Positions 14,648-35,829 of a stretch of 64,000 nucleotides of DNA are shown piece after piece. The number at the start of each line of letters is the position of its first letter. Within the stretch, counting starts at the first letter, position 1. The stretch is from the NCBI GenBank assembly GCA_937625935.1, contig OW569372.1, positions 124,001 through 188,000 of the forward strand, read 5' to 3'. The notes beneath the pieces are model-generated. The model did not search any database and was not told where the DNA came from. It saw only the letters and a program-made list of their open reading frames with translations. Source of the DNA: Tetramitus jugosus. Lineage: Eukaryota > Protista > Heterolobosea. The position numbers and the translations under genes are program-made.

Positions 14648-14685
14648 CGTTAACCCCAAAAGAAGCCAAATGCTATTGCCCCAAA

Positions 14686-15127
14686 TTTTTTTTTTTTTTT
14701 TTTTTAATACAACCATTGCGGTTGCTCACTTTATTATCAATACATTTTCATCAGCCATCGCTCATTGAGCGATGGCTCTTGGTCTTCTGATTAATTCCCA
14801 ATGACGCTCGCAGAGCGTCATTGTTGTTGTTTCGCTTTTGTTGTTGTGAAGAGGTGAAGGAGAGTCGTGAGACATCTCCGTTTCACCCCATTCACATAGG
14901 TTTTAGCTTTCTTACCGGCTTCTGCTGTTTTGATCCCAATTGCTACCAGTCCGTTGGTGACATCTTCGATGGCATTTGTTTCTATGCCCATCATACCTTT
15001 CAGGAACTCTCTGCTCGTCCATCGCAAAGGACGCTTTTCCATCTTGCCGCCCTTCAGTCTCACATTATCGAACCATATGTCGATACAGCTGTTGGCTGAC
15101 ACGTCGATACAGCTGTTGGCTGACACG
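14686..15127 (-). mobile_element. 5'-truncated non-LTR retrotransposon (442 bp) inserted 49 bp upstream of the 5S rRNA gene
   Basis: A20 tail (T 14686-14705); AATAAA; two CGCTC-N3-GAGCG hairpins; ORF2 C-terminus homologous to the intact copy (IWFDNV/LWFDKV, SREFLKGMMGIE/SREYLMGMMGLE, VKRRCLTTL/VKSRCITTL); 15-bp TSD TGCTATTGCCCCAAA at 14671-14685 and 15128-15142. Confidence 0.93.
15079..15126. repeat. Perfect 24-bp tandem duplication at the 5' junction of the truncated LINE
   Basis: GTCGATACAGCTGTTGGCTGACAC at 15079-15102 and 15103-15126. Confidence 0.95.
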
Positions 15128-15176
15128 TGCTATTGCCCCAAAAATCGAGTAAATAGCTCAGGTTTGCTCTATGAGT

Positions 15177-15296
15177 GTCTACGTTCATACAATGGTGGAA
15201 CCACCTATTCCCATTTCGAATAGAGAAGTTAAGCACCATCTGGCTGAGTTAGTATTGAGATAGGAGACTACTCGAGAACCCTCAGTAGTGTAGGCT
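15177..15296 (+). rRNA. 5S ribosomal RNA
   Basis: About 120 nt; terminal helix GTCTAC/GTAGGC; CCCATTTCGAA loop C; box A AGTTAAGCACCA; box C-like GTTAGTATTGAGATAGGAGAC; T4 Pol III terminator at 15296-15299. Confidence 0.93.
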
Positions 15297-15343
15297 TTTG
15301 GTTGACAACCAACCATTTTTATGCCCACAAAAACAACAGCTCC

Positions 15344-16330
15344 ATGAATATCGAGTGTGACATTAGTTCTGTCGAAACAATTCAAAATCGAGAGTGTCAA
15401 TGGAAGGATCAATGTGAAATCACGATTGAAATCACTTCTGTCCTTTGCTGGGACGTGTGGTCAAAAATCATTGAATTTTGTGACACTCGAGAATGGCTTC
15501 AATTGAGTTACACTTGCCATGGAATTAATCAATTTAAGTACAATCGATTACTCATGTTCAACAAGAAGAGAACACTCAAGAATAGCTTGAAAGAAAAAGA
15601 GATCGAGTACTACTTTCAATCATCCCGAGGAACACTGTTCAATGTTTGTTTCAGTTGGTGTCCGAATGTGGTGGATGAGCATTTTCAGTTTTTGGAGGGC
15701 GTTCATACATTGGATATGACACTTTGCACTCAAATAACAGACAATGCATTTTTTCATTTGAGTGGTGTTCACACACTCTACATGAGTGATTGTAAGAATA
15801 TTACAGACAAATCAATTTCTTATTTAACTGGCATTCACACACTTGGGATGAACGGTTGTCGTCGCATCACAGATGATGCATTCACTCATTTGACTGGTAT
15901 TCACACACTAGATATGGGTCGCTGCACTCAAATATCAGACAATGCGTTTCCCCACTTAACTGGAATTCACAAGCTCGATGTGAGTTACTGCACTCGAATA
16001 ACAGACAGTGCTTTCAGTCATATAACCGGCATTCACACACTCAATATGAGTGGTTGCAATCAAATTACGGATAAAGCATTCCATCATTTAACTGGCATTC
16101 ATACGCTCGATATGAGTTACTGCATTGGAGTAACAGACAGTGCATTTCATCATTTGAGCGGCATTCACACACTCGAGATGAACGGTTGCCGTCAAATCAC
16201 AGACAAAGCATTTCCTTACCTAACTGGAATTTACGAACTCAATATGAGCGGTTGTCATAATATTACAGACAACGCATTCACTCATTTGACTGGTATTCAC
16301 ACACTCTCTACCACCTTTCAAATAAGATAA
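15344..16330 (+). CDS. F-box/leucine-rich-repeat protein, truncated by an internal inversion (reconstructed ORF 15344-16618)
   Basis: F-box-like LCWDVWSKIIEFCDTREWLQLSYTC, then nine 22-aa LRRs (LTGIHTLDMSxCxxITDxAFxH) from 15692; further LRRs continue on the minus strand at 16320-16494. Confidence 0.85.
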   Translation: MNIECDISSVETIQNRECQWKDQCEITIEITSVLCWDVWSKIIEFCDTREWLQLSYTCHGINQFKYNRLLMFNKKRTLKNSLKEKEIEYYFQSSRGTLFNVCFSWCPNVVDEHFQFLEGVHTLDMTLCTQITDNAFFHLSGVHTLYMSDCKNITDKSISYLTGIHTLGMNGCRRITDDAFTHLTGIHTLDMGRCTQISDNAFPHLTGIHKLDVSYCTRITDSAFSHITGIHTLNMSGCNQITDKAFHHLTGIHTLDMSYCIGVTDSAFHHLSGIHTLEMNGCRQITDKAFPYLTGIYELNMSGCHNITDNAFTHLTGIHTLSTTFQIR

Positions 16331-16502
16331 GGCCTTCTCTGTGATCGACTCCTGAGAACATCCATTCATATGAATAAAATGTATGCCAGCCAAATGAGAA
16401 AATGCACGGTTTGTGACTTGATTGCAATTACTCATATCGAGTGAATAAATTCCGGTTAAGTAAGGAAAAGCATTGTCCGTGATTTGATTACATCGAAAGG
16501 TG
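16312..16502. other. 175-bp inverted segment bounded by an 8-bp inverted repeat
   Basis: CACCTTTC (16312-16319) and GAAAGGTG (16495-16502); the enclosed minus strand encodes RCNQITDNAFPYLTGIYSLDMSNC...EKALSYL. Confidence 0.88.
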
Positions 16503-16642
16503 TTCGCAGAATTTCTTGGTTTAGTAGTGGGGACGATATCAACTTCATAAACAAGGTGATCAAGTATTGCGAGGCCAACTCGATAACTCTTGTTGGGATG
16601 AAGGGAAAGCAATCATGAGAAGAAGTTTATTGAGACTTTCGA

Positions 16643-19600
16643 TTACATAAATAATGATTCATTGACCACCAACAAAACCTTGAGCTCCTCTTTTCTATCT
16701 GGAAAATATGAGAGGAAATAAGTGAGTTGACCACGCCATTTTTGCAATATTGAGGGAATGCGAGTGTTTCTTGTTGTTGGAGACAAGTCGTCAAAAGGAC
16801 TGCCAGACAGAATGTTAGGATTTGGCTCAGTATGAACATTCTGTTCCTCTTCCTCTTCATTTAGGGCTGACAGAGTGAATATACGGTGACTGAAGAGAAC
16901 ACTGTACAACAACTTTGCCAAGTCAAAGAATGCTTGACCTGCCTTTCCCTTGAGACCATAGAACACCAACTCATCAGTCAGATACCTCAAATCAAAATAC
17001 AACAAATTAAATTGCTTCTTCTTAAACATCTTGGACACCAAACCCACTCTTTCTAACGATCGAGCAGGGCCATTACGAGAACTAGATCTCATCTGATCTT
17101 GAACTTGTTCCAAGTTTGTGTCACACAACATCTTGAACTGTCTGAGAAGCAAACTGATTCTTTCTTCCAGAGAACTGAATGCGAAGGCATTTCTAGGTCC
17201 GGGTGCTGTGAAGAATTGTCTCAGATAACCTCGAGCAAAACGAATGGACACCCACCACTTCTCTTTCATGTTCTTTCGGTTATATATTGTTAAATGCTCT
17301 TCAATGTATTTTCCTTGTTGGAACACGTCATCAGAGCTGAAAATCTTGGCAATGTTCGGACGAATGGTAATGTAATGCTTCTCATTCTCACCGATTAGAC
17401 ACTTGTTTGGGATCTCCACATTAAAGTAAATACAGAAATCGCTTCGGATTGTGTACAACAGTGGCTCATCAAAACAATTCTCGATGACAATCTGCTCCGA
17501 TTCTGGCTCAATGTCACTTGAGGTGTCTTTTGCCACAAATAAGAGATCAGTAGATGGAATGTTAATTTGAGGAGGGGAACACTTGGCTCGCAAAGTCACA
17601 ACCTCTTGATAGTCCTTCACTAACCGACATTTGATGAATAATTGTTGTTCATCAATAAAACAAGGTGTATCGCTTGTGATGGCCCCCGAGTAAGTACTAT
17701 CTTTGGTATTGTAATTTGGTTTGTACAGAATATACACCTTGGTCTTACCGTATGGATCAACACGTAGCGTATGGAAACTCTTCAATGAAGTAAGAGAAAG
17801 AGAGAAATGGAGCTCAGCAGAACTATCTGGTTGAACATTAGAGGTTAAATGGAACTCGAGTTCCACATCAGACACATTAACAATATCAATGCTTCGATGT
17901 TTCACCATATGTCCAACAAATACTTCACCGAGATCTAAAATGTTGTTCTGGTCGATTGGAGACCCATCAACCAAAACATTGAACAACTTCTTAGCAGCAG
18001 ATCTCCCACTCAGAACAACTTCCATGTTGACTCTTATTGTCTTCATATCCTCAGGGTTATTCTTGTTTTCAATGATGAGATATGTGGAATGTGTTTTGAT
18101 TGTTTCAGTCATGAAGGTCACTGTGATACTCTGAGAGTCCAAGTGATTAGACAAAGTACCTTCGCTGTTACTCAGGTGGAGCCATGATGGAGTGTCGTTC
18201 TGTCTTCCGACTTCATACACACAATACTCAACAGGCAACGGGGAGTTGTTTTGTAACGTGAGCTCCCATGTGACTAGCTCGTTCTGATTCACCTGTCCCA
18301 CATTAATCTCGAACCTATTCGTATCAGCGCCCTTGATTGGAGTACAACCTTTGACAGACAATGTTGGTGTAAATTTGCTTGCCATTGAAGCAATCGGGGA
18401 TGGAATCGCAGAGTAATCATTAACAGTTGATTCAGAACTAGATAGTTCGTTCAATCCCAAGCTGTTCAAAATTCGCAATGGAAGAACAGCAGAAGACAAC
18501 GGTGCATAAATATCATTCACCTCGACACATGTTCCCTCTGGAAGCTCATTGAGAGGAGCACCATCCTTTGATTCTAGAAACACGCTCAAAACTGCAGACA
18601 CTCCAGGCTCTAGAGATCCCTGTACAGGAACAACATTAATTTGTAGGTTGTTATCCTTGGGCGGAGAATAATCAAATCTAAAATGCAAGGGAGCAAATGG
18701 CTTGATGTTCGTTAACGTGAATGTTTGACTGAGAACACGTTTCGTCTTGTCCACATTCATTGGGTTCTTTCTCCGATCTCCATGTTTGGATTGAACAGTT
18801 AAAGCATTGGCAGGACGGAACACAAGATTTGTGGATGTAGTTGTGAATGTTCTCATCTGGCTTAAACTACCCCAAATCGCAAACACTTCTGTCTTTTGAT
18901 CTCTGGCACGAATCTTGAGCTCGCCCAGTTTGAATGTGGTTGCCGGCTGACTATCTGTTTGAACATATTTCAATAATGCTTGTGGAATGAGTGCATCTGC
19001 ACTTACAGCTGAACAACGTACTCGAACAGCTAAGCTATCGTTCAACCGAAACTGATAATCTCTGAGAGGAGCACTCGTCACATTGTTCAAAATCTCAACC
19101 TTCAAGAAAGAACGAATGATTGTTTCTGATACGAACTCGAACTTGCATTCAATTGTATCCTCTGACTGATTCGTCATGCCAAAGGCTCGATCACTATAAA
19201 CAGAGGAATTGATCGCAGGATGCTGCAAAATCGGTAATGTGATAATATGATCCTGTTCAATTCGACTAAACTTCCATGCTCGCCTGGTGAGTGTCGATGT
19301 AATATCGAGTTTTAGATGATTAGAAGGATTATTAATGTTGAGAATATCAATATGACGTCTAACATTTGATCCTGCATGACTCATGAACTTCTTGGCAACA
19401 AGTACTGACTTAACTGTAGTAGTATCTAATGGCTCAACAGTAATTGTTCCATCCTCTCTCACTCCAAGAATCTGAATGTCATCTGCAGATGCAATTGGTT
19501 TGACAACTAATGGAGAATCTGACAAGTTCTGCAAGTGGAATGTGAAGAAGTCATTCATCCAGTTATTGATAAATCCAATTTTTCCAAGGTTGATAGATGT

Positions 19601-22600
19601 GGTAGGAAGAACACCTTCTGATATGCAAATTGAGGCATTGATGTAGATGAGCTTGACGGCAATACTGGAATGCCGATTGCTTGAGATATCAGTCAGCAAC
19701 AATGTGCCTGTCATAGACACTGTTTGATTCTTCTTAAGTGCTTCTCTTTGCTTGATAGTAACAGATGGTAAGTCTTCTGTCACCAAATATACTGTCGTTT
19801 CAACAGCAGGAGGAAGCTTAAATGGAAGCGAAGTATACTTCTTTCTATCTTTGACAAACATTGCAAGATTATCCTTCGTTAAATTGTCATGCCTTTCATC
19901 AGCGTACGACTGTTGACATACAAGCGTGATGTGGAAGTCGGATTCTGCCACCAGAATCATGTCCCTACTTGTTTTGTTCTTGAGTGTAAAGGACTGCACA
20001 GCAATAATTTTGGATTTCTGTTGCAGTCCAGATTTGATGAATATCTCATCACCTACAGCCTGTCTCATTTCATTCAGCTTGTCGGATCGGTTTGGCATGG
20101 ACACCAAAGATATCTTCTCACTCGATGACTGAGAAGTGGTAGCATATATTGAATCAAGTTGAACCACATCAACACCAGAGCTAGTTTGACCCAAACTTGT
20201 CTCCAATGACTGCTTGTCATCAACGAATACTCGGACTTTAATCTCATGCAGAACTTCATGGTCATCAGAATTTACAATCCTGATGGTATCCATATGAACA
20301 CCGTAACTATGAATCTTCATAGCGAACTTAATGCTGACCTTGCTACTTCCTTCTCTCTTCTTGTCTACACTAATGGCGTCCAATCTTCCCTTTGAAATAT
20401 CGAGCTCTAAGCTATCAGAGTCATGTTGAATCTCATAATTGAGTGGCATATGCATGGTACCATTCTCCATAACGAATGATGACTCTAGTGGCTTGTCCAA
20501 CGAGCTGATACAACCAAAATCTACTTCTAATGTTGAACAATTGAGAATCATCCTTCCAACAATCGTACGGTAACGAACAGTTCTCTCATACAGCTTTTTG
20601 CTTCTGTCTTCATTGAATATCTGACAACGTAAGCCACCAACAAGCAACCTACAATGACCCTTTTGTTTGTCGTGTGCCGACAATGACGGACTAATGCAAA
20701 CATACACAACTTGGCTCTCCCCTTTGAGTAAACTACACTTCACAGCCTTTCTGGTCAACTCTTCATCTAAATAGGCATACACCTGGCTGGGTGAATTTGA
20801 CACAATATCAAAATTTAGATTTTGATCCTTGTTGTTGGATAAAGTGAATGGGAATACTTTAGCAATCTTTTTACCACCCTGTGGTAAATACGTGAAACCA
20901 AAATCGAACTCTTGTTGTTCGTTAAGCATCGATATTGATACAGGAGATGCACTCTGCGGCGTACATGCAATTAATACAGTATGGATCTTCTTTGTCCGCA
21001 GATTTTGAACACTAATGTAATGTCTCTGCGATCCCATAGAAAAAGTTTCGAAATGTACCTCAATGACACATTCACCATTCGCTGGTACTTCTCCATTATT
21101 TTGACTAAAGGATATTTTTGCTTCAGTTGATGCTGATTTGTTCATGACAACAAATCCTGCAGGTTCCAACGACTTATTGAAGATGGTAAACTTACAGTTG
21201 ACCTTAGCCTCAACATCCACCTCCTTAAGATCAATATTCAAAGGAGAGACAATGAATGATATGGTGTCCTTATCTTGAGGAACCAACGGTTTTTCTACAG
21301 CCAAGATTGGTGGTTGTATCTTTCTCTTGTGATCTGAGTGTGCCCTCTTCCTACTTGTAAGTATGTTGAGATTGAATGTAACAATCTGCTGTGAGTCAAC
21401 ATTCTTTGTTTCTGAAATGAGAATCTTGCCATTGCCACGCTCAGCAACGATATTAGCTTCGTCATTTGGATATGGCGTAACTGAAACATTCACAACTTGT
21501 GTTCCCTTTGCAGGAATAGCAAACCTAATACCACTTTCCGTTGTCTTAAAACGTTTTCTTTTTCGTTGTTCTGATTCATCTTCAGACGAAGACATGAACG
21601 TATCGTCATCCTCCTTGTCAAAATTGAGTTGCTTCTTGATCTCTTTTACTCTCTGATCGAGCTTCTCAACCTTGGAAGATTTTCCCTTTCGAACTGCAAT
21701 TTTCATCTTTTTATCAATATCTTCCAACTCAGACTCGAGCTTTTCGGTCTCTTGATTCACACTCACCGGATCTAAATCATATGCGAATTTCAAGAACCAA
21801 TTCTCAAAGGTATTATGATCTACCTTAATGTCAAACACTCTTCGTTGCTTCGTAGTGTTGGTAATAACAATTCTCTTCAGGGCTGACTCGGTATTCATGA
21901 TAACATCGGAAAAATCAATGTCATTATTCTTAATCGCAAATCGCTGATGCTTTTTGATATCTGCCTTAATGGTAATAACAGTAAGCGCCTCTGGGTCCTG
22001 TACATTCACAAACGTCAATGTTTCATGAAATTTGCCCGATAGAGAAGGCTTGAACTTAAACTTAAGCTCTCGACTACCATATCCACGCAGAACACCAACT
22101 TTGGAATCTGAGCTTACTTGCAGATCGCCTGAAGCAATCGAGCCAGTTTTTTTGACACGGTACAGCAGAGGGACCTCACTTAGATTACTGATTCCTAGCG
22201 TTTTCGTTCGCTCTTCAGAATCCAAGATAGTACCAAAATTGATATGTTTTTGAGTCAGATCCATCATTGACCGACACACCTTGGCCAATATTGTGAGTTC
22301 TCTTGGAGGAATATGTTGTTTGTCAGGCTGGTTGCTCTGTTGCTCATAGGACAAGAGATTGATATAAATTGACTCTTCAATCTTCTTCAACGTACTGGAA
22401 ACATCTGGTCTTAACACTCCTGAGGGCCTGAATAATACATAGACATCCATATCAGTTTTTGGTTCCAAATCGAGAACAGAGCACTCAACGAGATACTGCT
22501 TTGAAATCAACTTCTCCAAATTCTCCCGTGCATCCATTTCTGCCTTCACATACTCGGATTCTTTTGTCATTCTCGATTCCAGAGAGGACTCTTCACACTT

Positions 22601-25818: not shown

Positions 25819-26182
25819 AAACAAGAGTATTATGCCGTTCGCAGCACAGCGGTTTCACACACACAAACGAATAGTCAGATATTGTACACACACATCTCGA
25901 AGAGAAATTCATTGTATTGTATCGATCTCTCTGTTTTATCCAAATAGGAAACACCCTCCACTGCACTGCTCTCGATACACCATCAGTGTATCTACACATT
26001 GGCTATGTTGAGAAAAATAGTAAAAATATAGAGATAAAAAATCATCCGAGTTTCGTTTTCTTCATTCTCATCAGATTCTTCACTTGTTGTCGTCGTCATC
26101 CATTGAAACATGCAACTTCTTCTTCAATTTCTTCAAAAAATGCATGCAACAACAAATTCATTAATAATTGTACGATGAAAAT

Positions 26183-26806
26183 TTACTGACGATTTTCTCT
26201 AGACACTTCCAATCCCCACTTCAAAATGCTTTCAGCTCTCTGTTGCTTGATGTCATTGAAATACTTTGGGTTCAAGCTCAAATACATATCCATTGCGATA
26301 GAGTTCATATATGGTTTGAATCTGAAGAAGTTTTCAGTTTCTTGGAACATTGTGTCGCTGTGAACAGTGTTGATCAAATCGTTATCAACAATGAATTCAC
26401 CATCAGGAATGGAAGCTTCCATGTTGAACTCCTGAGATCCAGGAAGGAGCTTAGATTCCTTAAAGTCCTTGTTCAACTGTTGTGTGTTGTTGTAAAAAGC
26501 AATACAAGAAAAGAAACGTGAGTTTTCAGGGCCACTACTGAAATTTGTTGTGAACGAAACATCGTCTCAAAATACGAGTCATGAATGATAACATACAACT
26601 CTGTTGGCGTAGGTCTTGAATTCTGGAGTAATGGTGAAGGATTGAACATCTTTCAAGTAGGAAATGATACCGGCAATGTATTCACTTTGGTTTGATTGTT
26701 GGACCAAGTGGTGACTTGCCTTGAAGTTGATATGAGCAGTGTTGTATGGATTGACAGTGTTTGCTCTAACAAACTTGGTTGCCTTTGTTGCAATTTGCTT
26801 GGACAT
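26183..26806 (-). CDS. Hypothetical protein, possibly mitochondrial; intron 26477-26596
   Basis: Two ORFs joined in frame by a GTATGT...CAG intron; basic, acid-free N-terminus. Confidence 0.6.
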
Positions 26807-26956
26807 TTTTTGTTGATGTAAGTGAGTGTTTGCTTCTGGTGTTGATTTTTGTTTGGCTCAGAAACGCGGAAAAATTTCGATAAGTTGACCGCAAAGTGAT
26901 TACAACAAAAAATGCCGCGTTCACAGAAAAAAAGGGCATGTGTGAAGTTTTGTGTT

Positions 26957-28369
26957 TTACTTTGACTTTTGTTGGTTACGTTGTTGTTCGGCTGTTAGTG
27001 CTTTCTCGTACTTCTTTGATCTGAGTTTCCATGTGGCGGTTGTGACACCGTCTTCATTGGTCACTGTTGCGTCTCTTTCGAAGCCCAAAATCTTGACGAC
27101 AGGCTCGATGGCGTCCTCTGGAATTTTCAAGTCGGTATGCAGACAATCAAATCGGATCACAAAGTTTCTCACATGAGCATACATCAGAATAATGTGCGCC
27201 AGCAATTTGTCGGTATTTTCCTTTGATTTCGCCACGTGCTTATCTCCGGCCTTTGTAGTAAACATGCTCACCAAGTGGTTGGCGATTCTCTTGTTTGGAA
27301 CGACGAGCTTAACCTTCTTGAATTCGTTATGAGAAGAGTCGTCGAGTTTACCTTGGAGTGCATCCTTCAATGCGTTGCTAGAGAAACGGGTAGGTGCATT
27401 GTACATCCAGATCAAATAACTCAGATATAGTGCTCTTCTGGTCAATTGCAAATCGATGTCGCTCTTGAAGAAATCAGCATTAAATTGCAACAATTCATGC
27501 ACAACTGTCGGAATCTTCTCCATAGCCACCTTTTTAGGTATTTTTCTGCCTTGGGTGAATGTGAGGAAATCGACATCAATGTCCACCTTGTTCAAATCTT
27601 CAATCAGAGCCTCAGACAATAATTCGTTCAGTGGGAAAATATCCTTGGCCATTGCGGCACTCTTGTTTGCAACTGGGAAGTATTCTGGATACTTTGGTCT
27701 GTATCCAACATTCTTCTTTCCAGTAGATGAGAGAGCCTTCTCCAACAGATTAGTCTTATTCAAGTTGTATCTCTCATTTGATCGGAGTGACTTCTTGGCT
27801 CTTGCATTACCAAAATCAGCAACATAGTCACTTGCTTTCATAGTCTTCTCCACATCAGAGTCATCGTCATCGTTGGTTAAGCTTTCCAACAGCTTCTGCT
27901 TCATTCTAAACACCTTTTCCAATGGTGTCACCTTGACAGTGTTTGTCTCAGGGTCATAGACACCGAGTGCGAATCGAGTTTGTACCTTTTCAATCGCAAC
28001 ACCATTCTCGTCAATATCAACTTCGGCATCTTCATCGTCTTCTTCCTCCTCATCTTTGCGATTAAATGTCCGTTGTGCAAAGAAGCACAGAGAATCTGTT
28101 TCTCCGTAGAGGAACTGAGAATTTTGATTGGTTTGCTTTTTGTAGTGCAATAATTGTAGGTCACCAGGCACATTGACACCACTTGGATAAGTGGTGAGAA
28201 GTGGTGCTTCCAACTTGTCATTACTCTTGTCTACGTTGAATGTAATTTCTGTTCCTGATGATGATGATGGTGCTTGTTTTGATTGATGATTGACTTTTTG
28301 CTTCTTTGAAGATTTGGTCGACGCATCAGATTTTTCATCCTGATGTCTCTTTTGTTTTTGATTGGCCAT
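26957..28369 (-). CDS. POLR1E: RNA polymerase I subunit RPA49/PAF53
   Basis: RFALGVYDPETNTVKV, DFGNARAKK, PVANKSAAMAKDIFPLNELL, DKLLAHIILMYAHV...LHTDLKI...ILGF...ATWKL. Confidence 0.8.
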   Translation of the reverse strand: MANQKQKRHQDEKSDASTKSSKKQKVNHQSKQAPSSSSGTEITFNVDKSNDKLEAPLLTTYPSGVNVPGDLQLLHYKKQTNQNSQFLYGETDSLCFFAQRTFNRKDEEEEDDEDAEVDIDENGVAIEKVQTRFALGVYDPETNTVKVTPLEKVFRMKQKLLESLTNDDDDSDVEKTMKASDYVADFGNARAKKSLRSNERYNLNKTNLLEKALSSTGKKNVGYRPKYPEYFPVANKSAAMAKDIFPLNELLSEALIEDLNKVDIDVDFLTFTQGRKIPKKVAMEKIPTVVHELLQFNADFFKSDIDLQLTRRALYLSYLIWMYNAPTRFSSNALKDALQGKLDDSSHNEFKKVKLVVPNKRIANHLVSMFTTKAGDKHVAKSKENTDKLLAHIILMYAHVRNFVIRFDCLHTDLKIPEDAIEPVVKILGFERDATVTNEDGVTTATWKLRSKKYEKALTAEQQRNQQKSK

Positions 28370-28666
28370 TTGTTATAAAAGATGATGAATGTGTCTGTCG
28401 CTTTCGTAGTTTAAAATGGGAGAAGGTGAAAGGAAGGAGTGAGTGTGGAGGGTAAGGTTCAGGTCGAGGTAACAATATCCTTTCTATTTCCTTTTCGGTT
28501 TTGTTTTATTGAGAGCAGGAGGTGAGCAAGCTCTTGTGTGAATTTTTTCTTGACTTCGACGTGAAAATGTTTCTTGCTTTTCACCGCCAGAGAAAATTCA
28601 GAGTTTTGGTTGAAAGTTCAACAAAGTCGGACAAAATACAAGGTGGGCGGGAAGGGTTTGCACCGT

Positions 28667-28959
28667 TCATGAGGATGGCTGGTTTTGATGTTGTTGAATG
28701 GTTTTTGCTTCACTCTTCAATTCTTTGACGCATGCAGCAAGTGATTCTGGACTGACACCAAGTTCACACAACTGAATCAAAATACTGAGACTTTCCTTGT
28801 CGAGATTTGCCCCTAAAAGCTTGTTCATTTCATAGATGGCTAGTTGACAAAACATATGATTAGTTTATTGTTCATCAAGTTTGTAATGTTTAGACAAAGG
28901 TAGTTCGTTGGTTACATACTATCCAGAGCCTCTCTGGCTGCGTTCTGTTGTTCGTTCAT
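28667..28959 (-). CDS. MZT1: Mitotic-spindle organizing protein 1 (MOZART1); intron 28840-28919
   Basis: MNEQQNAAREALD|TIYEMNKLLGANLDKESLSILIQLCELGVSPESLAACVKELK. Confidence 0.92.
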
Positions 28960-28988
28960 TTTTCTGTTCGCTCAAAAGCACGAACAAG

Positions 28989-29004
28989 AATTTTTGGCGG
29001 GAAG
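28989..29004. promoter_or_regulatory. E2F-like site about 30 bp upstream of the MZT1 start
   Basis: AATTTTTGGCGGGAAG contains the TTTGGCGGGAA E2F consensus. Confidence 0.55.
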
Positions 29005-29170
29005 TTGAGGTAGTTTCCAGTTCTGGAATTTTTGAGAGCACACCTAATGCAGTGAATGTGATTCAATACCCTCTAATCGAATTAGCATGCATGTTGTGAC
29101 AGAGCTTCTTTTTGTATCCCTCGTAAAATTTTTTGGGCACCTAGTTCTTAAACGGGAGAAATTGATATAT

Positions 29171-29266
29171 TCCCATATAGTCTAGCTGGTTAGGATATCC
29201 GGCTTTCACTTCCAAGCTGATAGCTAAAGTTCCCGGAAGACCCGGGTTCGAGTCCCGGTATGGGAG
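29171..29266 (+). tRNA. tRNA-Glu(TTC) with a 23-nt canonical intron (29209-29231)
   Basis: Acceptor stem TCCCATA/TATGGGA; anticodon stem TCCGG/CCGGA, loop CT-TTC-A^C; T arm CCGGG-TTCGAGT-CCCGG; T runs downstream. Confidence 0.93.
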
Positions 29267-29369
29267 GATCTTTTATCGTTTTTGCCAGTTCTTGGGGAAA
29301 CCCAGAATAACTTATGAAATTTGTTCTGGGGAGCTCGAGAAAGGAACATGGAAAACAAACACCAAAACA

Positions 29370-30398
29370 ATGCAACCTATTCAAGGTACTGATAAGGTCG
29401 ACATGAATCAAGAGTTGGAAGTCTCTTCGACAGAGGAGGGAGAAGTTTGGACTCAAAACATATTCGAGTTATTGTCCTGTGACTTGCAACTGTACATTTT
29501 AACATTCCTGTGCATGCAAGATTTGTATCATGTGTCATTGAGTTGTCAGCATGGTGCCTACTTGGTTCTGAGCCCGGAGAATGATGGATATCTGTGGAAA
29601 TTGGTGTTGACCAATCAAGTCGGGTTGAACAGTGATGGAGAGGCTCTCGTTGCAGTGCAAGAACGTCAAATGAAGAAAAAGGATACTGAAGAAGAGCTTT
29701 TGTCAGATTTGTCGTTGGATGTGGAAAAGTACAATGAAACTTCAAAGGTAGAAGAGTGTTTGGACAGCACGTGGAGAACTTTGGTTCGTTTGAACATGTT
29801 TCGATGGGAACCCGATTCAATGACACCAGACACTGACCTTACAATACTCAACGCTAACAAGACAATATTTTGTGAGAAACGGGAGAAGTGGAACACGATC
29901 CGAACAAACCGAAAGCTTGAAATGGGAAGGGTTCATTGTTGGGAGTACATTCTAGATGAACATGACAATGGAAGTTACAATGCCTATCGTGTGTTCGTTG
30001 GAATCCAGAGAAGTACATATGAGTTTACCAAAGCGGAGCGAGACAAGATCATTGGATTACGCAGTGAAGGTGTGAGTTACAACCTCGGTCAGCATATAGT
30101 CCACTCAGGCGATATAGCTGTTGATTCTGTCCTGAAATCGCAGAATTTTGTGTTTAGTTCAGGTGACACAATTGCAATTCAGTTTGACTTGAAGAACTTG
30201 AGTGATTCGGATACTGCGTCTATGTATCTCTTCAAGAACAATGAGTATTTTCACACCATAACAGGAATTCCAACACAAGATATTGTGTACTATCCTGCAA
30301 TATCAGTCATTTGTCGTCAGAAGGTGTCGATACGACTTAAGCAACCATTGATGCTCCACAAATTGAAATCAATGTGGAATGAAATGGTGAGTCAATAA
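29370..30398 (+). CDS. F-box and SPRY/B30.2 domain protein
   Basis: FELLSCDLQLYILTFLCMQDLYHVSLSC...LWK (F-box); GRVHCWEY...VFVGI...FSSGDTIAIQFDL...LFKNNEY...YYPAISV (SPRY). Confidence 0.88.
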   Translation: MQPIQGTDKVDMNQELEVSSTEEGEVWTQNIFELLSCDLQLYILTFLCMQDLYHVSLSCQHGAYLVLSPENDGYLWKLVLTNQVGLNSDGEALVAVQERQMKKKDTEEELLSDLSLDVEKYNETSKVEECLDSTWRTLVRLNMFRWEPDSMTPDTDLTILNANKTIFCEKREKWNTIRTNRKLEMGRVHCWEYILDEHDNGSYNAYRVFVGIQRSTYEFTKAERDKIIGLRSEGVSYNLGQHIVHSGDIAVDSVLKSQNFVFSSGDTIAIQFDLKNLSDSDTASMYLFKNNEYFHTITGIPTQDIVYYPAISVICRQKVSIRLKQPLMLHKLKSMWNEMVSQ

Positions 30399-30685
30399 AA
30401 TAACATTCTTTTCGCTAGCAGATGAATATTGACCCCATTAGAACATGTAATATCAAACAGGGCATTGTACAACTTCTGCATAACCTCTTTCGTACGTAGG
30501 GTACCACTCCTGAGACCTGGTGGTAGAATCACTATCGAGTCTAAAAGGCAGAATAGTTCCACCCAACCTCACAACGACCTCAGGCCTCGCGGCGTTTTTT
30601 TTTTTTTTTTTTTTTTTTAATACAACACGAGGTTGCTCTTTATTACTCTGTCCTACTTTCTTTTAGTTTCTCAGATCGTCCTTGT

Positions 30686-30740
30686 GACGCTCGGAGAGCG
30701 TCTCCTCTTTCCTGTTAGTAACGCTCGCAGAGCGTTACTA
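30686..30740 (-). other. Twin 3'UTR stem-loops of the retrotransposon
   Basis: TAGTAACGCTC-GCA-GAGCGTTACTA (30716-30740) and GACGCTC-GGA-GAGCGTC (30686-30702). Confidence 0.85.
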
Positions 30741-33700
30741 CTGTTTGCAGTCCTTTGATTGCTGGTAGAGTCTGTGAAGCGTTGTGATGCAGCGACTCTT
30801 CACCCAGCACACAAAACTACGGGCCTTTCGATGCGCTACTTCTTGTTTCATCCCATTTTTCATCAGCGCATCCGTCACTTGGTCGACAGCACCGTTCTCT
30901 AATCCCATCATTCCCATGAGGTACTCTCTGCTCGACTTCCTCGGCATGGGCCACATGAATCCGTTTCTGAACAGCACTTTGTCAAACCATAGGGAGATGG
31001 AGGACTCTCGATGTAATGGAAGTTTGAGCAACTTGTTGTAGACTTCCAGGACGAGTCTTCTCCTGGCATCAATTGCATACTGACACCTGACAAGGCAATG
31101 GAGGATTGTATCAGGTTCGGTGCCGCATCTCGGGCATAGATTGGGGTCGTCATCATCGTACAAATAGTTACATACCACTCTGGTGTGCAACGTACCACTA
31201 CGTACTTGAGCGTGGAACCATTCCAACCGGCGATCAACAACAAATGGATTCTTGAGAAAGTCGAACTGATTCTTATGTTCCATCGCAGCGACTTGCAACC
31301 ACCATTGCGGATTCCGACAGATGAACGCCTTACGTTCCTGGAGGAACAATTCCTTCAGATCTTCTTTTCCCCTTGCATACTTACCATTGAATCTGATGGT
31401 ATGTATGAACCCCTTTGTTTGATGCAACTCCAAATTCATGCATTCTGGCATTGCCATCACCGTGAGGGCCACCTCCTGGTAGGTTTTAGGCCCAAACCCC
31501 TTGCCAACCTCGGTTTTTAGTGACTCGAAGCTCTTGATTCTTCCCTCATGAAGTAGTTGTTGTTTCTGATACAGTCCAGCCCTACTGAGCAGTCTGAGGG
31601 ACCTAGCTGGCAAGTAATTAGATAATTTGCACCCTTCACAGCGGCTATGGGAGTCATCAGTGATGATGATTCCCTTCTCGTGCAGCCTCATTGCGCACCA
31701 TTTCATGAAAGAGTGTTTGACTTCCGTAACTCTGTGGTCCGACTGGAAGACGTTCTCCGACCGGAACGTGTAGTGTTTCTTGATGTACTCAAGAGTGTCC
31801 ATCCACAGAACGTTGGCTTCTTTATCTCTCTTCCCTCTCATCATGGATTTCACGAAAAGAGCTGTGCGAGTAGCAACTGCTTCCGAGAAGTTATCCAAAC
31901 CAATGGATCCCCACTCGGGACCGATGTATAGTAACTCCGTCGGATATCTCAACATAGCTGTTGAACCATGTTTGATAAGCCTCTTTCCAACCATATTCAC
32001 ATCATCCATCGATTTCATCGTCCATTTTGTGAATTCACATGCGTACAAAAAGATGGGGTGTACACATGCGTTCACGACACGTGCAACTTGCCTGGGACCC
32101 AGATTCAAGACTTTGAGACGTTCAATGACTCTTCTGGCTTTAACCTTTGCTTGAGCAATCTGCTGATCAGTCTTGCCTTGGAGATTGAGAAATAGTCCGA
32201 GTGCACGGAAGTGCACCTTTGGACCTTTGGCAGGCACTCTGGAGTTAGCTACCATAATGTCGTGCTCTTCAATATCGTCTCCTGGCTGTCTGACAAAGAG
32301 TTCGAGTTTGTTTGGGTGCATCTGCATCCGCAACATCTCCAATACCCCACTCATATCATTGGCAATGCGCTCTATATCTTCCTTGGATTCTGACACAATG
32401 TTGCAGTCATCAACATACGCAATGTTCCAGATCTTTTGAGAGAGCGCCTGGTATCCAATTGCTCTACGTTGTGCGAACATGAGGACTGTTTGATGTACCA
32501 ATACATATGTAGTGGGAGACAACGAGTCCCCTTGTCTCGTGCCCTTGTTGATTTTGAAGGGTCTCGAGAGTTGTCCTGCCAAAACTTGTGCCTCATTGTT
32601 CGACACCATATCAGTGACTAACTTGGCGATGTTGTCTGGGTAGCCGAAGAAATCGTAGACGGCACGTATTGCGTTATGTGGGACTGAGTCAAAAGCCTTC
32701 GAGATGTCTGTTAACAAAAGGTATAGTTGTCTCTGCCTCCTATTCGCGTCATCGACAATTCCTCTAATTATTGACAACTTTTCTCTAATATCTCTCATGC
32801 TGCGTCCACCTCCTTGTGTCTCATTAAAGACTTCGCAATTCTCTGCTGCCAACGAGACTCTCTTGTTGAGTAGTCTCGTGTAAACTTTTGACAGAGAGCT
32901 TAGCAGGCTTATCGGACGATAATTATCGAGCGTTCTGCTGTCGCCTTTTTTGTAAGCAGGGATGATGATACTTCTTTTCCACTCAACCGGGAACTTCCCG
33001 GATCTTGTGATGTTGTTAAAGAAGTGAGTGAGGGTCTCTGCTAGTTCTCTACGACAGTCGCGGTTCTCGATACGTGGGAGCTTTAACATTTCGTTCTTGA
33101 TTCCGTCTATCCCCGGTGTCTTGTTGTTTCTTAGCCATCCGAGAGCTTCATTCACTTCCTCAATTGTGATGGAAGAGAATGCTCTTTCCATCTCAATGGG
33201 CTTCTTGTTAAATTTCAACTCGGATAGATACGACATGTCCGCAATCTCTTCAGAGAAGGCCTCCTCGAAATGAGTCGCTGCACTCTCTGCAACAGCTCTA
33301 TTGTCATGGGTTATTCGTCCTGCACTCTGACACGAGTTGTACCTGACTCTTTTGGCCTTCTTTGCTGTCGATGAAGCAAAGAACAGACCCGAATTGATAT
33401 GCTCGGACGTTCTCGCTTTCCAGAGCCACTTGCGGAACTGGCGATCATGTGTCCTGCGCCTCTCAGTGTGTAAGAGTTTGTCAACCTTCATAAGTGCTGC
33501 TAACACACTGGACTTTGACTTGACCCCTTGTAAGCCATACTTGTTCAGGAGATTGTCCAACTTTGGGATGGACAATGTGCTATTCGTGATTGAATCAATC
33601 AGCACTGCCCTGTGCTGTATAAGCCGTCTGGTCCGTCTATTCTCCCTCACTCTCTTTTCCTCTTTCCTAACTTGAAAGCATTGAGCGTGTTTAATGATCG

Positions 33701-34562
33701 TGGAGGTAATGAGATCGCATTGCATATTAACATCACTAATGTCCGCGATACTGTGTTTTTTCAAATCATTTAACAGTCCTTCCGCGTATCTCGTCCACTT
33801 TGGGTCATCCTTCTTGCTTGGGAAACAATGAGTTATCAGGATGGGTCCTTGGCTCCTACTGACAGTACTCGGAACTTTCAGTTTTACCTCAATCGGTAAG
33901 TGGTCACTCCTAATACCGTTCTGAGAATAGATTCCAACACTCTGGATGTCGACTAATGTTTTCCTGTTGCACCAGACTGTGTCGAGTCTTGATGAGACAC
34001 TCTCTCGGAAGAATGTGTGAACTTTAGGCAGACCGAGTGCATCTTGGACATCAAGTAGAGCAGAAGCGTCCATTGCAGTTTCAAATAGTATGCTGTTACT
34101 ATCCAAACGGCCAGATGATCTGTCTGTTCTTTCAATTACTGTGTTATGGTCTCCCCCCATTAACACTTTGCTTTCAACGCTGATCATGTTCAATATAACG
34201 GAGAGTCTTTCGTAATGTTCCTCACTCCTCACATGTGGGCCATAATGATTGACCAGTGTGTAACTGGTTGAACCGATACTGATGCTCAGGACTTGTATTC
34301 TGTCGCTGGAGTGGGTGATTCCATAGCTGTCCACTGAAGTGACCTTGATGATTGTCGCTACATACTTACTTGGTGTGTCGCACAACAGGACACAATTGAT
34401 TCTCTCCAGCTTTCTGTTGACCTTCTCACAAAAGTGTTCATCCATTTTGCATGCTTCCTGGATCATAATCACATCAATATTCTCTGTCGTTAGAATGTTA
34501 ACGATATCATGGATCTTTCCTCTAATCCCATTGACATTGTACCACAGGATTGTCAAACTCAT
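30738..34562 (-). CDS. Retrotransposon ORF2: AP-like endonuclease, reverse transcriptase and CCHC zinc knuckle
   Basis: EN: YNVNG, IQE, GGDHN, SRLD, SDH. RT: NYRPISLL, DISKAFDSV, GTRQGDSLSP, YVDD. C-terminal CPRC...HCLVRC. Confidence 0.98.
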   Translation of the reverse strand: MSLTILWYNVNGIRGKIHDIVNILTTENIDVIMIQEACKMDEHFCEKVNRKLERINCVLLCDTPSKYVATIIKVTSVDSYGITHSSDRIQVLSISIGSTSYTLVNHYGPHVRSEEHYERLSVILNMISVESKVLMGGDHNTVIERTDRSSGRLDSNSILFETAMDASALLDVQDALGLPKVHTFFRESVSSRLDTVWCNRKTLVDIQSVGIYSQNGIRSDHLPIEVKLKVPSTVSRSQGPILITHCFPSKKDDPKWTRYAEGLLNDLKKHSIADISDVNMQCDLITSTIIKHAQCFQVRKEEKRVRENRRTRRLIQHRAVLIDSITNSTLSIPKLDNLLNKYGLQGVKSKSSVLAALMKVDKLLHTERRRTHDRQFRKWLWKARTSEHINSGLFFASSTAKKAKRVRYNSCQSAGRITHDNRAVAESAATHFEEAFSEEIADMSYLSELKFNKKPIEMERAFSSITIEEVNEALGWLRNNKTPGIDGIKNEMLKLPRIENRDCRRELAETLTHFFNNITRSGKFPVEWKRSIIIPAYKKGDSRTLDNYRPISLLSSLSKVYTRLLNKRVSLAAENCEVFNETQGGGRSMRDIREKLSIIRGIVDDANRRQRQLYLLLTDISKAFDSVPHNAIRAVYDFFGYPDNIAKLVTDMVSNNEAQVLAGQLSRPFKINKGTRQGDSLSPTTYVLVHQTVLMFAQRRAIGYQALSQKIWNIAYVDDCNIVSESKEDIERIANDMSGVLEMLRMQMHPNKLELFVRQPGDDIEEHDIMVANSRVPAKGPKVHFRALGLFLNLQGKTDQQIAQAKVKARRVIERLKVLNLGPRQVARVVNACVHPIFLYACEFTKWTMKSMDDVNMVGKRLIKHGSTAMLRYPTELLYIGPEWGSIGLDNFSEAVATRTALFVKSMMRGKRDKEANVLWMDTLEYIKKHYTFRSENVFQSDHRVTEVKHSFMKWCAMRLHEKGIIITDDSHSRCEGCKLSNYLPARSLRLLSRAGLYQKQQLLHEGRIKSFESLKTEVGKGFGPKTYQEVALTVMAMPECMNLELHQTKGFIHTIRFNGKYARGKEDLKELFLQERKAFICRNPQWWLQVAAMEHKNQFDFLKNPFVVDRRLEWFHAQVRSGTLHTRVVCNYLYDDDDPNLCPRCGTEPDTILHCLVRCQYAIDARRRLVLEVYNKLLKLPLHRESSISLWFDKVLFRNGFMWPMPRKSSREYLMGMMGLENGAVDQVTDALMKNGMKQEVAHRKARSFVCWVKSRCITTLHRLYQQSKDCKQ

Positions 34563-35677
34563 AGCTGATCGTTGTTGTCTTCATCCACCATTGTTGTTTC
34601 CATGGTTGCCATTCTAGGGTTTACCTCAACAATATCACTCATTCTACCCAATCTAGGTGGTGTCCTTCTCCTTTTCTTGATCGTGTATCTATCTAACCAG
34701 CTACCTCCTCTTTTTCCGTTGTTATTCTTAGGAGTCAAGACTTCCTTTTGTATGGTGTTTCTGACCATGCTAGTGATGAATCTTTCAGCTTCTGGGCTGA
34801 GCCCGCTCTCTGTCGTGTTACTACTGTTACTGGTTCTGTTAGGTGTTGATGGTGATGGATCATCGGTGGTATCACCACTGATATCCATTCCATTGAGCGC
34901 TTCTTGATTTGTTACCTCTTGATTTTGTTCTTCTGGGTCATTGCCCTCGATGCTCGTTACCTGGGTTGGTACATGCCTCTTTCTAAGGATTTGTACAGAC
35001 TTCTTGTTCCTTTCCATCGAAAGTTCCTTGATTTGCTTCTCTAATGCTTCAATCTTACTGCTTAGACTCTTCACCATGTCGACCAATTCATATTTGATCT
35101 TGAGCATCCTCTTTCTTGTTTTCTTGTTCGTATCTTCGGTTCTTTCTACATACTTGCTTACAGATCCATTTGGTACTTCAAGTGATTCCATCACTGCCTG
35201 TGCATATGATTTTGATTGCATGGTGACGAACGCTGTACTACCATTGATTGCCACATGCTTAACCTTATCGTTACCGATCATAGATTTGATATCGTTCTCT
35301 GTTTTGCCATTGACATTGTGGACAACAACTTTCTTGTCGTTGTCTATACCTCTCTTCACCTCGGCTCTCATATGAGGGCTACTCTCTTTGTTGAAGAGTT
35401 CAACAAAATCATACAAATTATCATCCTTTACATTGGCCCAAGCGATAAATCGTTCCTTGTCTCTTTTGATCACTTGTACTCTCATCAACCAGCCTTCATG
35501 TCTCATAGCAATCGACTTCGCAATTGTGCTTGCGGTCCTTTCTCTTTCTACACCCTTAATGACTACTTCTTTCTCGTTCATAACTCCCCGTGGCATTCTC
35601 GTCCAGACAGAGTACCCGTCCTTGGTATACTCTCTAACCTCCTGAGAGGATGGAATTGTTTGCGTTTTTTTCTGCAT
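34559..35677 (-). CDS. Retrotransposon ORF1: RRM-like domain(s), coiled coil and disordered basic tail
   Basis: KKVVVHNV...TAFVTMQSKSYAQAVMESL (RRM-like); LVDMVKSLSSKIEALEKQIKEL (coiled coil); lies inside the TSDs, upstream of ORF2. Confidence 0.88.
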   Translation of the reverse strand: MQKKTQTIPSSQEVREYTKDGYSVWTRMPRGVMNEKEVVIKGVERERTASTIAKSIAMRHEGWLMRVQVIKRDKERFIAWANVKDDNLYDFVELFNKESSPHMRAEVKRGIDNDKKVVVHNVNGKTENDIKSMIGNDKVKHVAINGSTAFVTMQSKSYAQAVMESLEVPNGSVSKYVERTEDTNKKTRKRMLKIKYELVDMVKSLSSKIEALEKQIKELSMERNKKSVQILRKRHVPTQVTSIEGNDPEEQNQEVTNQEALNGMDISGDTTDDPSPSTPNRTSNSSNTTESGLSPEAERFITSMVRNTIQKEVLTPKNNNGKRGGSWLDRYTIKKRRRTPPRLGRMSDIVEVNPRMATMETTMVDEDNNDQL

Positions 35678-35739
35678 TTTTTTTTTTTTTTTTCAGGCCT
35701 CGCGGCGTGGGTTTTGCAATGAAGAACCTTCCGATATGA

Positions 35740-35810
35740 GCATCTGTAGTGTAGGGGTATCATGCAGCGTTGCCATCGCTGCGACCCGGGTTCGAATCCC
35801 GGCAGATGCA
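35740..35810 (+). tRNA. tRNA-Gly(GCC)
   Basis: Acceptor stem GCATCTG/CAGATGC plus A; anticodon arm CAGCG-TTGCCAT-CGCTG; T arm CCGGG-TTCGAAT-CCCGG; TTTT terminator. Confidence 0.97.
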
Positions 35811-35829
35811 TTTTGCCCGCTTTTTGCAG

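Follow-up and report, generated by a model that had tools for sequence, protein, structure and literature searches.

Retrotransposons that target genes transcribed by RNA polymerase III (Pol III) are the textbook example of integration into the safe harbours of a compact genome. To our knowledge, LINEs directed to a place just upstream of Pol III genes have been described previously only in Dictyostelium slime moulds, and we found no published report of such LINE targeting in Heterolobosea. The slime mould element TRE5-A inserts upstream of tRNA genes at a distance of 47 ± 3 bp, its 5′ end pointing toward the 5′ end of the tRNA, and uses 5S genes also (PMC5391098). The preliminary description of the DNA considered here had drawn a comparison with TRE5-A on the basis of its distance (about 50 bp upstream) and orientation, and this comparison is accurate.

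We have analyzed a stretch of 64,000 nucleotides, hereafter called the window, from the genome of Tetramitus jugosus, an amoeba of soil and groundwater that is a relative of Naegleria. The genome of this host is 26 Mb and densely packed with genes; within the window, neighboring genes are separated by a few hundred bp. The preliminary description had also considered the host heterolobosean rather than dictyostelid and had proposed to verify its identity; comparison of UBA1, which is 45–46% identical to that of Acrasis and Naegleria, agrees with this view and places T. jugosus among the heteroloboseans (Discoba), not the dictyostelids. The two insertions that had been reported in the window, namely an intact element beside tRNA-Gly(GCC) and a 5′-truncated relative beside a 5S rRNA gene, were reproduced at the same coordinates, each lying head-to-head with its Pol III gene and flanked by perfect target site duplications (TSDs) of 14–16 bp (table 1). 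The intact element ends in a poly(A) of 24 nt and the truncated copy, which has the same 3′ motif, in one of 20 nt; the 5′ oligo(A) of the intact element measures 16–17 nt. The older LINE fragment found behind the 5S-adjacent copy, in the same orientation, is probably an earlier insertion that has been displaced outward. No LINE homology is present upstream of the third Pol III gene of the window, tRNA-Glu(UUC).

Table 1. Position of the retrotransposon insertions and Pol III genes within the window (numbered from its first nucleotide)
Feature	Positions	Strand	Remarks
Older LINE fragment behind the 5S-adjacent copy	13583..13765	-	ORF2 residues 1109-1170, 45% identical; same orientation as the 5S-adjacent copy
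Distal TSD copy of 5S-adjacent insertion	14671..14685	.	tgctattgccccaaa
5′-truncated copy, diverged lineage	14686..15127	-	ORF2 residues ~1181-1258, 42% identical
Proximal TSD copy, end 34 nt before 5S	15128..15142	.	tgctattgccccaaa
5S rRNA gene, targeted Pol III gene	15177..15296	+	5′ end of truncated copy 49 nt away
tRNA-Glu(UUC) with intron, unoccupied	29170..29267	+	third Pol III gene of the window
Distal TSD copy, beside poly(A) end	30580..30594	.	[t]caggcctcgcggcg[t]
Intact full-length non-LTR retrotransposon, lineage A1	30595..35693	-	5099 bp including poly(A)
3′ terminal motif GCAAC-loop-GTTGTATT, directly before poly(A)	30619..30640	-	kept in all lineages
ORF2, 1274 aa, APE and RVT_1 domains	30738..34562	-	domain search
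ORF1, 372 aa	34559..35677	-	no Pfam match
Gene-proximal TSD copy, end 32 nt before tRNA-Gly	35693..35707	.	[t]caggcctcgcggcg[t]
tRNA-Gly(GCC), targeted Pol III gene	35740..35810	+	element 5′ end 46 nt away

The catalytic residues of APE and RT recognizable in ORF2 assign these elements to the APE-type non-LTR retrotransposons (LINEs), and a poly(A) tail, variable 5′ truncation and sequence-variable TSDs are all present. ORF2 of the window element matches RVT_1 (7e-29) and also Exo_endo_phos; its APE nuclease spans residues 6–221, in which N9, E36, D138/N140, D194 and D220/H221 are present, and its RT spans residues 539–757, with the YVDD sequence at 716, followed by a C-terminal CCHC knuckle (residues 1143–1160). 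A domain search of ORF2 returned no RNase_H at E ≤ 0.01. The start of ORF2 overlaps the stop of ORF1 in the sequence ATGA. Comparison with Pfam gave zero matches for ORF1, in which fold analysis indicates a β-hairpin and two RRM folds (approximately residues 37–107 and 116–175), then a long helix (183–233) and a disordered basic tail; the RRMs hence precede the coiled coil, in the order opposite to that of mammalian L1. The machinery of the window copy is intact. The neighbors of ORF2 in the protein atlas carry APE, RVT_1 and zf-RVT together.

In the genomic DNA covered by the analysis, loci were picked solely by their similarity to the window element and not by nearness to Pol III genes. Among the loci so chosen, a LINE lies head-to-head with 29 Pol III genes, comprising 26 tRNA genes (for 15 amino acids) and three 5S genes, and the element 5′ end faces the gene in all 29 abutting cases. 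Where TSDs define the insertion, the distance from this end to the gene is mostly 45–49 nt (range 39–54), and the TSDs, of 14–17 bp, start mostly 29–34 nt upstream of the gene, with outliers at 27 and 37–43 nt. Since the insertions differ from one another in truncation point, TSD and tRNA type, they represent independent events. A cross-match of coordinates found 16 head-to-head pairs versus 2, 4 and 2 in three control configurations, and a second cross-match found 10 versus 0 and 2, in both cases among the matches listed. The association of these LINEs with Pol III genes far exceeds chance, and the fixed position and orientation upstream of tRNA and 5S genes, which the preliminary description had deduced from two insertions and wished to see examined genome-wide, is borne out across the genome. 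In a survey of coordinates only, among the genes and matches listed and with some gaps judged by eye, at least 12 of 53 tRNA genes and at least 12 of 47 5S genes are occupied, approximately one quarter of the 100 listed genes. The identical arrangement is seen in three contigs from other assemblies (L062, L063 and L064); the metagenome contigs L057–L059 end short of the 5′ flank.

Copies lying away from genes are mostly stacked behind younger copies. Some stacks carry one TSD repeatedly, as at locus L015, where an identical TSD of 15 bp follows both of two elements, and at loci L048 and L045 nested TSDs take in the 5′ terminus of the element already present. The same target site is used repeatedly, producing the stacks. 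About seven of some 38 sites have no Pol III gene in the flanking DNA examined with Rfam (L016, L021, L032, L040, the fragment L041, L047 and L050), and at two of these, L047 and L050, a clear TSD is absent as well.

The elements had been considered a single family previously; the family is real, but its scale was understated, for the group consists of a few hundred copies distributed across several diverged lineages. At least four lineages can be distinguished, with ORF2 proteins 34–75% identical. Between diverged lineages with the same target, ORF2 identity is 34–49%, and several ORF2 frames of 1203–1318 aa are open among them. The target and the 3′ end motif are common to all; the motif is kept in about 200 copies, and a search for it returned 279 matches versus two for the control. 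Full-length copies of lineage A have an oligo(A) of 4–17 nt immediately before the ATG, while those of lineages B and C start with an A-run plus approximately 20–25 nt. Intact ORFs, perfect TSDs and the existence of copies that are 95–98% identical indicate recent mobility. Groundwater populations harbor copies of 98–99% identity. We found no empty allele of the intact element (joint 30594>35708) in contigs from four public runs, groundwater and soil metagenomes among them, across positions 30200–36100, a region at whose T-runs these contigs break. Other joints seen in the public runs were rejected as empty alleles, since they stem from truncated paralogs located beside different tRNA-Gly genes.

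We interpret these results, with a probability of about 0.85, as the activity of related APE-type LINEs that use target-primed reverse transcription to insert at a constant position before Pol III genes, to which the initiation complex would tether them. The gene-sense strand is nicked first, approximately 31–33 nt upstream of the 5′ end of mature tRNA or 5S, and the second nick lies approximately 15 nt further upstream; two nicks separated in this way account for the duplication of 14–17 bp and for an element 5′ end that lies about 46 nt from the gene and faces it. Some protein component of the Pol III initiation machinery would hold the integration complex in place, and TFIIIB would be the likeliest holder because it is located upstream of tRNA and 5S genes alike. 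The contact may go via ORF1p, with its tandem RRM and coiled coil, or via ORF2p. The hairpin-like conserved 3′ motif probably constitutes the mark by which the RT recognizes its own RNA, and the gain for the element would be a safe harbour within a gene-dense genome.

It is possible, but less likely, that the tether is not TFIIIB and that the complex instead recognizes TFIIIC, a subunit of Pol III itself or the nucleosome-free boundary found in front of Pol III genes that are active. The evidence measured here is one of position only, and Ty1 integrase binds AC40, Ty1 relying on Pol III subunits (PMC7459421, PMC5911963). Moreover, no LINE was found within 1.5 kb of U6 (n = 2) or 7SL (n = 4) genes, a result that is uninformative for six genes at an occupancy of approximately 25%. 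Against these alternatives, each cut site varies by only about 2 nt (31–33 and 46–48 nt upstream), whether the gene is of type 2 (tRNA) or of type 1 (5S), a precision that suits a fixed upstream factor better than the gene-internal TFIIIC or a chromatin window like that of 1 kb used by Ty1. TRE5-A, which has the identical geometry (PMC5391098), contacts TBP, Brf1 and Bdp1 of TFIIIB through its ORF1 protein (PMC5911963).

The elements might be true kin of dictyostelid TRE5, by common ancestry or horizontal transfer, and have inherited their targeting. The likeness in geometry and orientation, together with the use of 5S in both systems (PMC5391098), and the shared ORF2 layout of APE, RT and zinc knuckle would agree with such kinship, as would the APE domain, for which the best match among solved structures is the human L1 endonuclease, over its full length and with no match to TRAS1 or R1Bm, given that TRE5 is classed under L1 (PMC5911963, Table 1). 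Yet the RT profile ranks R2 (99 bits) over L1 (75 bits), the 5′ UTR is merely about 4–28 nt long and the nearest named relatives are only 24–35% identical. The 30 best hits that we looked up by name come from arthropods, fish, nematodes, algae or unnamed metagenomes and include no dictyostelid sequence, and word-index searches returned only distant or unnamed hits. TRE-like elements are reported to be missing in non-dictyostelid amoebozoans (PMC5006619). We therefore consider kinship with TRE5 unlikely. Distant relatives of about 25% identity that possess RNase H (metagenome contigs L060 and L061) have no adjoining Pol III gene, indicating that the targeting is not general among the nearest outside LINEs. 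Discoba is a third eukaryotic supergroup, in which TRE5-like targeting probably had an origin of its own.

It is very improbable that insertion is guided by a DNA motif that is conserved in front of Pol III genes and read by the endonuclease. A weak bias exists in the targets, 11 of 26 sites having G at –30 and the stretch from –29 to –1 being A/T-rich, but no position between –45 and –2 exceeds 0.58 bit in the 26 tRNA targets; the TSDs have no common sequence and the upstream regions of tRNA and 5S genes are mutually unrelated. Because the target DNA is without a conserved motif, the specificity is positional, as had been surmised from the two dissimilar TSDs of the window: the place of insertion is fixed by the distance to the gene and not by sequence. 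Random insertion followed by selection sparing harmless copies only, which the gene density of the genome and the short spacers of the window could suggest, is contradicted already by the data, for selection fails to account for a window of 2–3 nt or the strict orientation (16 versus 2, 4 and 2 pairs among the matches listed), for the reuse of 15-bp TSDs and for the fact that the downstream side of these genes is free of copies.

The full-length copies of three diverged lineages have nearly no 5′ UTR and are always separated from a Pol III gene by about 46 nt, which raises the speculative idea that the neighboring tRNA promoter, bound by TBP and TFIIIB and free of nucleosomes, doubles as a divergent promoter for the element. 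If this were true, the Pol III gene would be landing pad and transcription unit at once, and the spacing would serve expression too. More generally, a phylogenetically remote second system with the same 46-nt head-to-head geometry provides a test of whether the conserved architecture of TFIIIB on DNA dictates this geometry, and comparison of ORF1 and ORF2 surfaces between the two systems could locate the contact. Several diverged and apparently intact lineages, together with dispersed 5S targets, constitute experimental material. The Tetramitus elements also represent a natural model of site-directed LINE integration, and annotators of heterolobosean genomes gain a rule for locating such repeats.

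Among other known systems, sequence-specific LINEs of the Tx1 clade and R-type reside inside multicopy RNA genes, such as Mutsu in 5S, Keno in U2 and R1/R2 in 28S. They resemble the Tetramitus elements in being tied to small or ribosomal RNA genes, but recognize a DNA sequence internal to the gene, which they disrupt, whereas the Tetramitus elements leave the gene intact and accept an arbitrary target sequence. In a safe-harbour strategy, Ty3 and Ty1 of Saccharomyces and other fungal and dictyostelid LTR elements (Tj1, DGLT-A) likewise insert upstream of Pol III genes, with contacts to TFIIIB in the case of Ty3 and to Pol III subunits in that of Ty1 (PMC5911963). All of these use an integrase, as opposed to the target-primed reverse transcription of the Tetramitus elements, and differ from them in distance, which is 1–4 bp for Ty3 and anywhere in a 1-kb window for Ty1. 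In Polysphondylium pallidum (Heterostelium), Pp_NLTR-B is a non-TRE LINE that is found 39–64 bp upstream of tRNA genes and is regarded as convergent with TRE5 (PMC5006619). It is known from three copies and has RNase H after the RT, whereas the Tetramitus elements have hundreds of copies in several lineages and no RNase H detected; in place of this domain, characteristic of NLTR-A and NLTR-B, their ORF2 has the CCHC knuckle downstream of the RT.

In TRE5 elements the 5′ UTR is long, is built of the modules A and B and functions as promoter, while the 3′ end carries a C module. Such a 5′ UTR is not found in the full-length Tetramitus copies, which have an oligo(A) or about 28 nt in place of the modular promoter region of TRE5-A (TRE5 UTRs are drawn in PMC5911963, fig. 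1). TRE5-A, B and C of dictyostelids are like the Tetramitus elements in being of APE type, with ORF1 and an ORF2 containing APE, RT and a zinc knuckle. TRE5-A further shares with them the TSDs, the 5′ truncations and the clusters at tRNA genes, about 24% of which it occupies (PMC5391098, PMC5006619, PMC5911963), compared with about one quarter of the listed tRNA and 5S genes in Tetramitus. The two differ in their hosts, heterolobosean (Discoba) and amoebozoan, respectively, and in the 3′ terminal motif that is common to all Tetramitus lineages. They differ also in their relation to 5S genes, for the dispersed chromosomal 5S genes of Tetramitus are hit as often as its tRNA genes and at 41–49 nt, whereas TRE5-A lies 35–42 away from 5S.

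The coordinates of the Pol III genes and LINE copies in the window are collected in the table below. ARAGORN and Rfam find the three Pol III genes counted in the preliminary description (5S rRNA, tRNA-Glu(UUC) and tRNA-Gly(GCC)), whose coordinates for the two LINE insertions are all correct; the distances it had claimed between gene and LINE 5' end, 46 nt for tRNA-Gly and 49 nt for 5S, were reproduced, with target-site duplications (TSDs) at both copies. In the complete element, ORF1 and ORF2 are joined by an ATGA overlap. At its truncated 5' junction, the copy abutting the 5S gene has 24 bp perfectly repeated in tandem (2 x 24, 15079-15126), possibly left by template switching when the second strand was joined, and an older LINE fragment (13583-13765) lies behind this copy. 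The tRNA-Glu(UUC) gene of the window, which has a 23-nt intron, is unoccupied; another tRNA-Glu(UUC) copy, at locus L004, has a near full-length element.

Pol III genes and LINE features in the window
Feature	Position	Strand	Remarks
Truncated LINE copy	14686-15127	-	last part of ORF2 only (42% identical) + 20-nt poly(A)
TSD of truncated copy, tgctattgccccaaa	14671-14685 and 15128-15142		
5S rRNA	15177-15296	+	ARAGORN/Rfam
tRNA-Glu(UUC), intron-bearing	29170-29267	+	ARAGORN/Rfam
Complete LINE (lineage A1)	30595-35693	-	24-nt terminal poly(A)
ORF1, 372 aa	34559-35677	-	
ORF2, 1274 aa	30738-34562	-	RVT_1 at 7e-29 + Exo_endo_phos nuclease domain
TSD of complete LINE, [t]caggcctcgcggcg[t]	30580-30594 and 35693-35707		
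3' motif in window copies	30619-30640 and 14706-14727		
tRNA-Gly(GCC)	35740-35810	+	ARAGORN/Rfam

The proposal of a LINE family inserting upstream of Pol III genes proved real and general in this genome (26.35 Mb in 56 contigs, GC ~41%; the window is C29:124001-188000). A DNA search of the assembly with the window element gave 73 matches, and we examined 30 loci with 1.5-kb flanks together with 20 further regions of 5-10 kb, the sole selection being similarity to the element. A LINE lies directly upstream of 29 Pol III genes, namely 26 tRNA genes for 15 amino acids and three 5S genes, and the orientation is strict, the LINE 5' end being turned toward the gene's 5' end (head-to-head) in all of them. 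Because truncation points vary among the copies, the insertions are independent. The LINE 5' end is mostly 45-49 nt from the gene (range 39-54 in TSD-defined copies), and the TSDs, which measure 14-17 bp where detectable, start mostly 29-34 nt before the gene's first base (mode 31-33; outliers 27 and 37-43). Such junctions bear the hallmarks of target-primed reverse transcription (TPRT) and, read in its terms, have fixed nick positions, the first on the gene-sense strand ~31-33 nt upstream and the second on the other strand ~15 nt farther out. Rfam detected no Pol III gene within the DNA examined at ~7 of ~38 sites, and two of these (L047 and L050) are also without a clear TSD.

A complementary gene-centred survey, made by coordinates only, covered 53 nuclear tRNA and 47 5S genes, as listed. 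A six-frame search with the C-terminus of ORF2 yielded 114 matches from 394 candidates; relative to the listed genes, these stood head-to-head in 10 cases, on the same strand in none and on the 3' side in two. Across contigs C1-C15, 16 sites of the 3' motif of the element had a listed gene no more than 6.5 kb away in head-to-head arrangement, versus 2, 4 and 2 in three control configurations. Two further searches, with gaps read by eye, located defined 5' ends at a distance of 40-55 nt from genes on the list, at C52:234569, C34:262204, C13:105984, C20:209704, C20:180678 and C8:45640. Occupancy among the listed genes is thus at least 12 of 53 for tRNA and at least 12 of 47 for 5S, about a quarter. 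The 5S genes of this host form neither an array nor part of an rDNA unit, being almost identical single copies, no fewer than 47 of them spread over at least 25 contigs, and since they are dispersed they are frequent targets. Contigs C54 and C56, whose tRNA genes share their coordinates (941, 12773, 14364, 14438 and 44585), look like one organelle-like molecule assembled twice.

Alignment of the 26 tRNA targets on the gene start gave at most 0.58 bit at every position from -45 to -2, with G weakly preferred at -30 and A/T-rich DNA closer to the gene. This independence from target sequence, together with the unrelated sequences of the TSDs, indicates that the specificity is positional rather than sequence-based, as had been surmised from the two window copies.

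Some copies depart from the usual arrangement. A plus-strand fragment (L033:4765-5960, with ORF1 from residue 44) starts 16 nt beyond the 3' end of a tRNA-Cys gene on the same strand, its own 5' end thus being directed at the gene's 3' end; upstream, this gene also has the usual stack. In a few places (C10:118326/118604, C4:139391/139690 and C20:343455/343621) a LINE end is separated by 165-300 bp from a Pol III gene without being head-to-head to it, and it is possible that these gaps contain an undetected tRNA gene.

Copies away from genes are mostly found behind LINEs of the same orientation, the innermost of which abuts the gene (L008, L020, L032-L034, L038, L045, L046, L048 and L049). At L015 an identical 15-bp TSD follows each of two successive elements, while at L048 and L045 TSDs formed later overlap with the previous one and extend over the initial bases of the element already present. 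The junctions within these stacks show that the same site has been used repeatedly.

The copies belong to several diverged lineages with a common target. Other A1 copies are 86-98% identical to the window copy and A2 copies ~73% in DNA; lineages B, C and others have 36-49% identity in ORF1 and 34-49% in ORF2, with open ORF2 frames of 1203-1318 aa in several of them. The window copy's ORF2 carries the catalytic residues of the APE nuclease as well as YVDD and a CPRC...H...C knuckle; RNase H is not detectable in it. ORF1 has no relative in Pfam or Atlas; from the alignment of lineages, AlphaFold places a beta-hairpin, two RRM folds and a 50-residue helix in a confidently predicted N-terminal half (pLDDT 80-92), with a disordered basic tail after it, and Foldseek matches this model to tandem-RRM proteins and to DBHS proteins of RRM-RRM-coiled-coil type.

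Full-length copies of lineage A begin with 4-17 nt of oligo(A) followed at once by the ATG, and those of lineages B and C with an A-run plus ~20-25 nt (5' ends read at window 35678-35693, L004, L024, L031, L034, L046, L048 and L049). So short a leader in every lineage leaves no room for an upstream promoter within the element. The 3' end is common to all lineages: AATAAA...GCAAC-loop-GTTGTAT(T)-poly(A), with a loop of 4-9 nt, kept even where ORF2 is only 40% identical between lineages (LINE 3' ends, L002-L050). It has 279 genome matches versus 2 for a reversed control, in ~200 distinct places. Of 25 sequences, 23-25 retain its five-pair stem, with scarcely any compensatory change, and the motif thus represents conserved sequence and possibly structure.

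Signs of recent activity are the intact ORFs, pure 24-nt tail and perfect TSD of the window copy, and the 95-98% identity of other A1 copies. A groundwater metagenome contains pieces 98.5-99% identical spanning 32519-35599, and a soil metatranscriptome has pieces of the 3' part, which may be DNA carry-over. No empty allele was seen in four public runs. Public sequencing runs place the host in groundwater and soil.

The best named relatives of host UBA1 (48206-51382) are those of Acrasis kona (46%), Naegleria lovaniensis (45%) and Willaertia magna (44%), then Percolomonas, and metagenome proteins match it at 97% and 66%. This makes the host a deep-branching heterolobosean and not a dictyostelid, in agreement with the preliminary description. 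Exhaustive HMMER searches retrieved 70,772 RT-bearing proteins, the close ones being only short fragments (37-89% identity) from metagenome contigs and P0020 from NCBI assembly GCA_037189345.1; named matches, at 24-35%, belong to arthropods, fish, nematodes and an alga, and ORF1 relatives are unnamed sequences only. Metagenome contig L057 is 95.5% identical to a lineage of the host genome. Two ENA contigs have a tRNA gene head-to-head with ORF1 of lineage B or C; these two contigs match loci C4:242008 and C9:70635 at 93-96% identity, the flank as well, and hence show the same insertions in close relatives. In a GCA_037189345.1 contig (L064), a lineage-C-like LINE 5' end (80% aa identity) lies 56 nt from a tRNA-like gene (3219-3278, Rfam 30.2 bits) without most of the D arm. 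Two full-length relatives that are more distant (~25% identity) and have RNase H showed no Pol III gene in their vicinity. When compared with solved structures, the profile of the family gives 99 bits for R2 RT and 75 bits for L1 RT; among LINE nucleases of solved structure, its nuclease matches L1-EN only. Atlas neighbours have the architecture APE + RVT_1 + zf-RVT.

Integration would be positioned by a tether to the Pol III initiation complex, for which TFIIIB is the favoured anchor, since this factor sits upstream of type 1 as well as type 2 genes and since TRE5-A offers a precedent. The adaptor would be ORF1p or the C-terminus of ORF2p, the 3' motif would serve as the recognition site of the RT, and the promoter would be internal or borrowed. 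At tRNA genes TRE5-A integrates 47+/-3 bp upstream, its 5' end strictly turned to the gene, and at 5S genes it lies 35-42 bp away; it occupies ~24% of tRNA genes, and its ORF1 protein contacts TBP, Brf1 and Bdp1 (PMC5391098, PMC5911963). Our full-text literature search found no report of Pol III-targeting LINEs in Heterolobosea or Naegleria; in a 2018 review, the Pol III-targeting elements of any kind that are listed all come from fungi and dictyostelids (PMC5911963), and Spaller et al. consider TRE targeting restricted to dictyostelids, describing also Pp_NLTR-B, an RNase H-bearing element unrelated to TRE that is found at 39-64 bp (PMC5006619). With this family, a new eukaryotic supergroup has a TRE5-like system that shows features of its own and a relation to TRE5 of either convergence or distant kinship.
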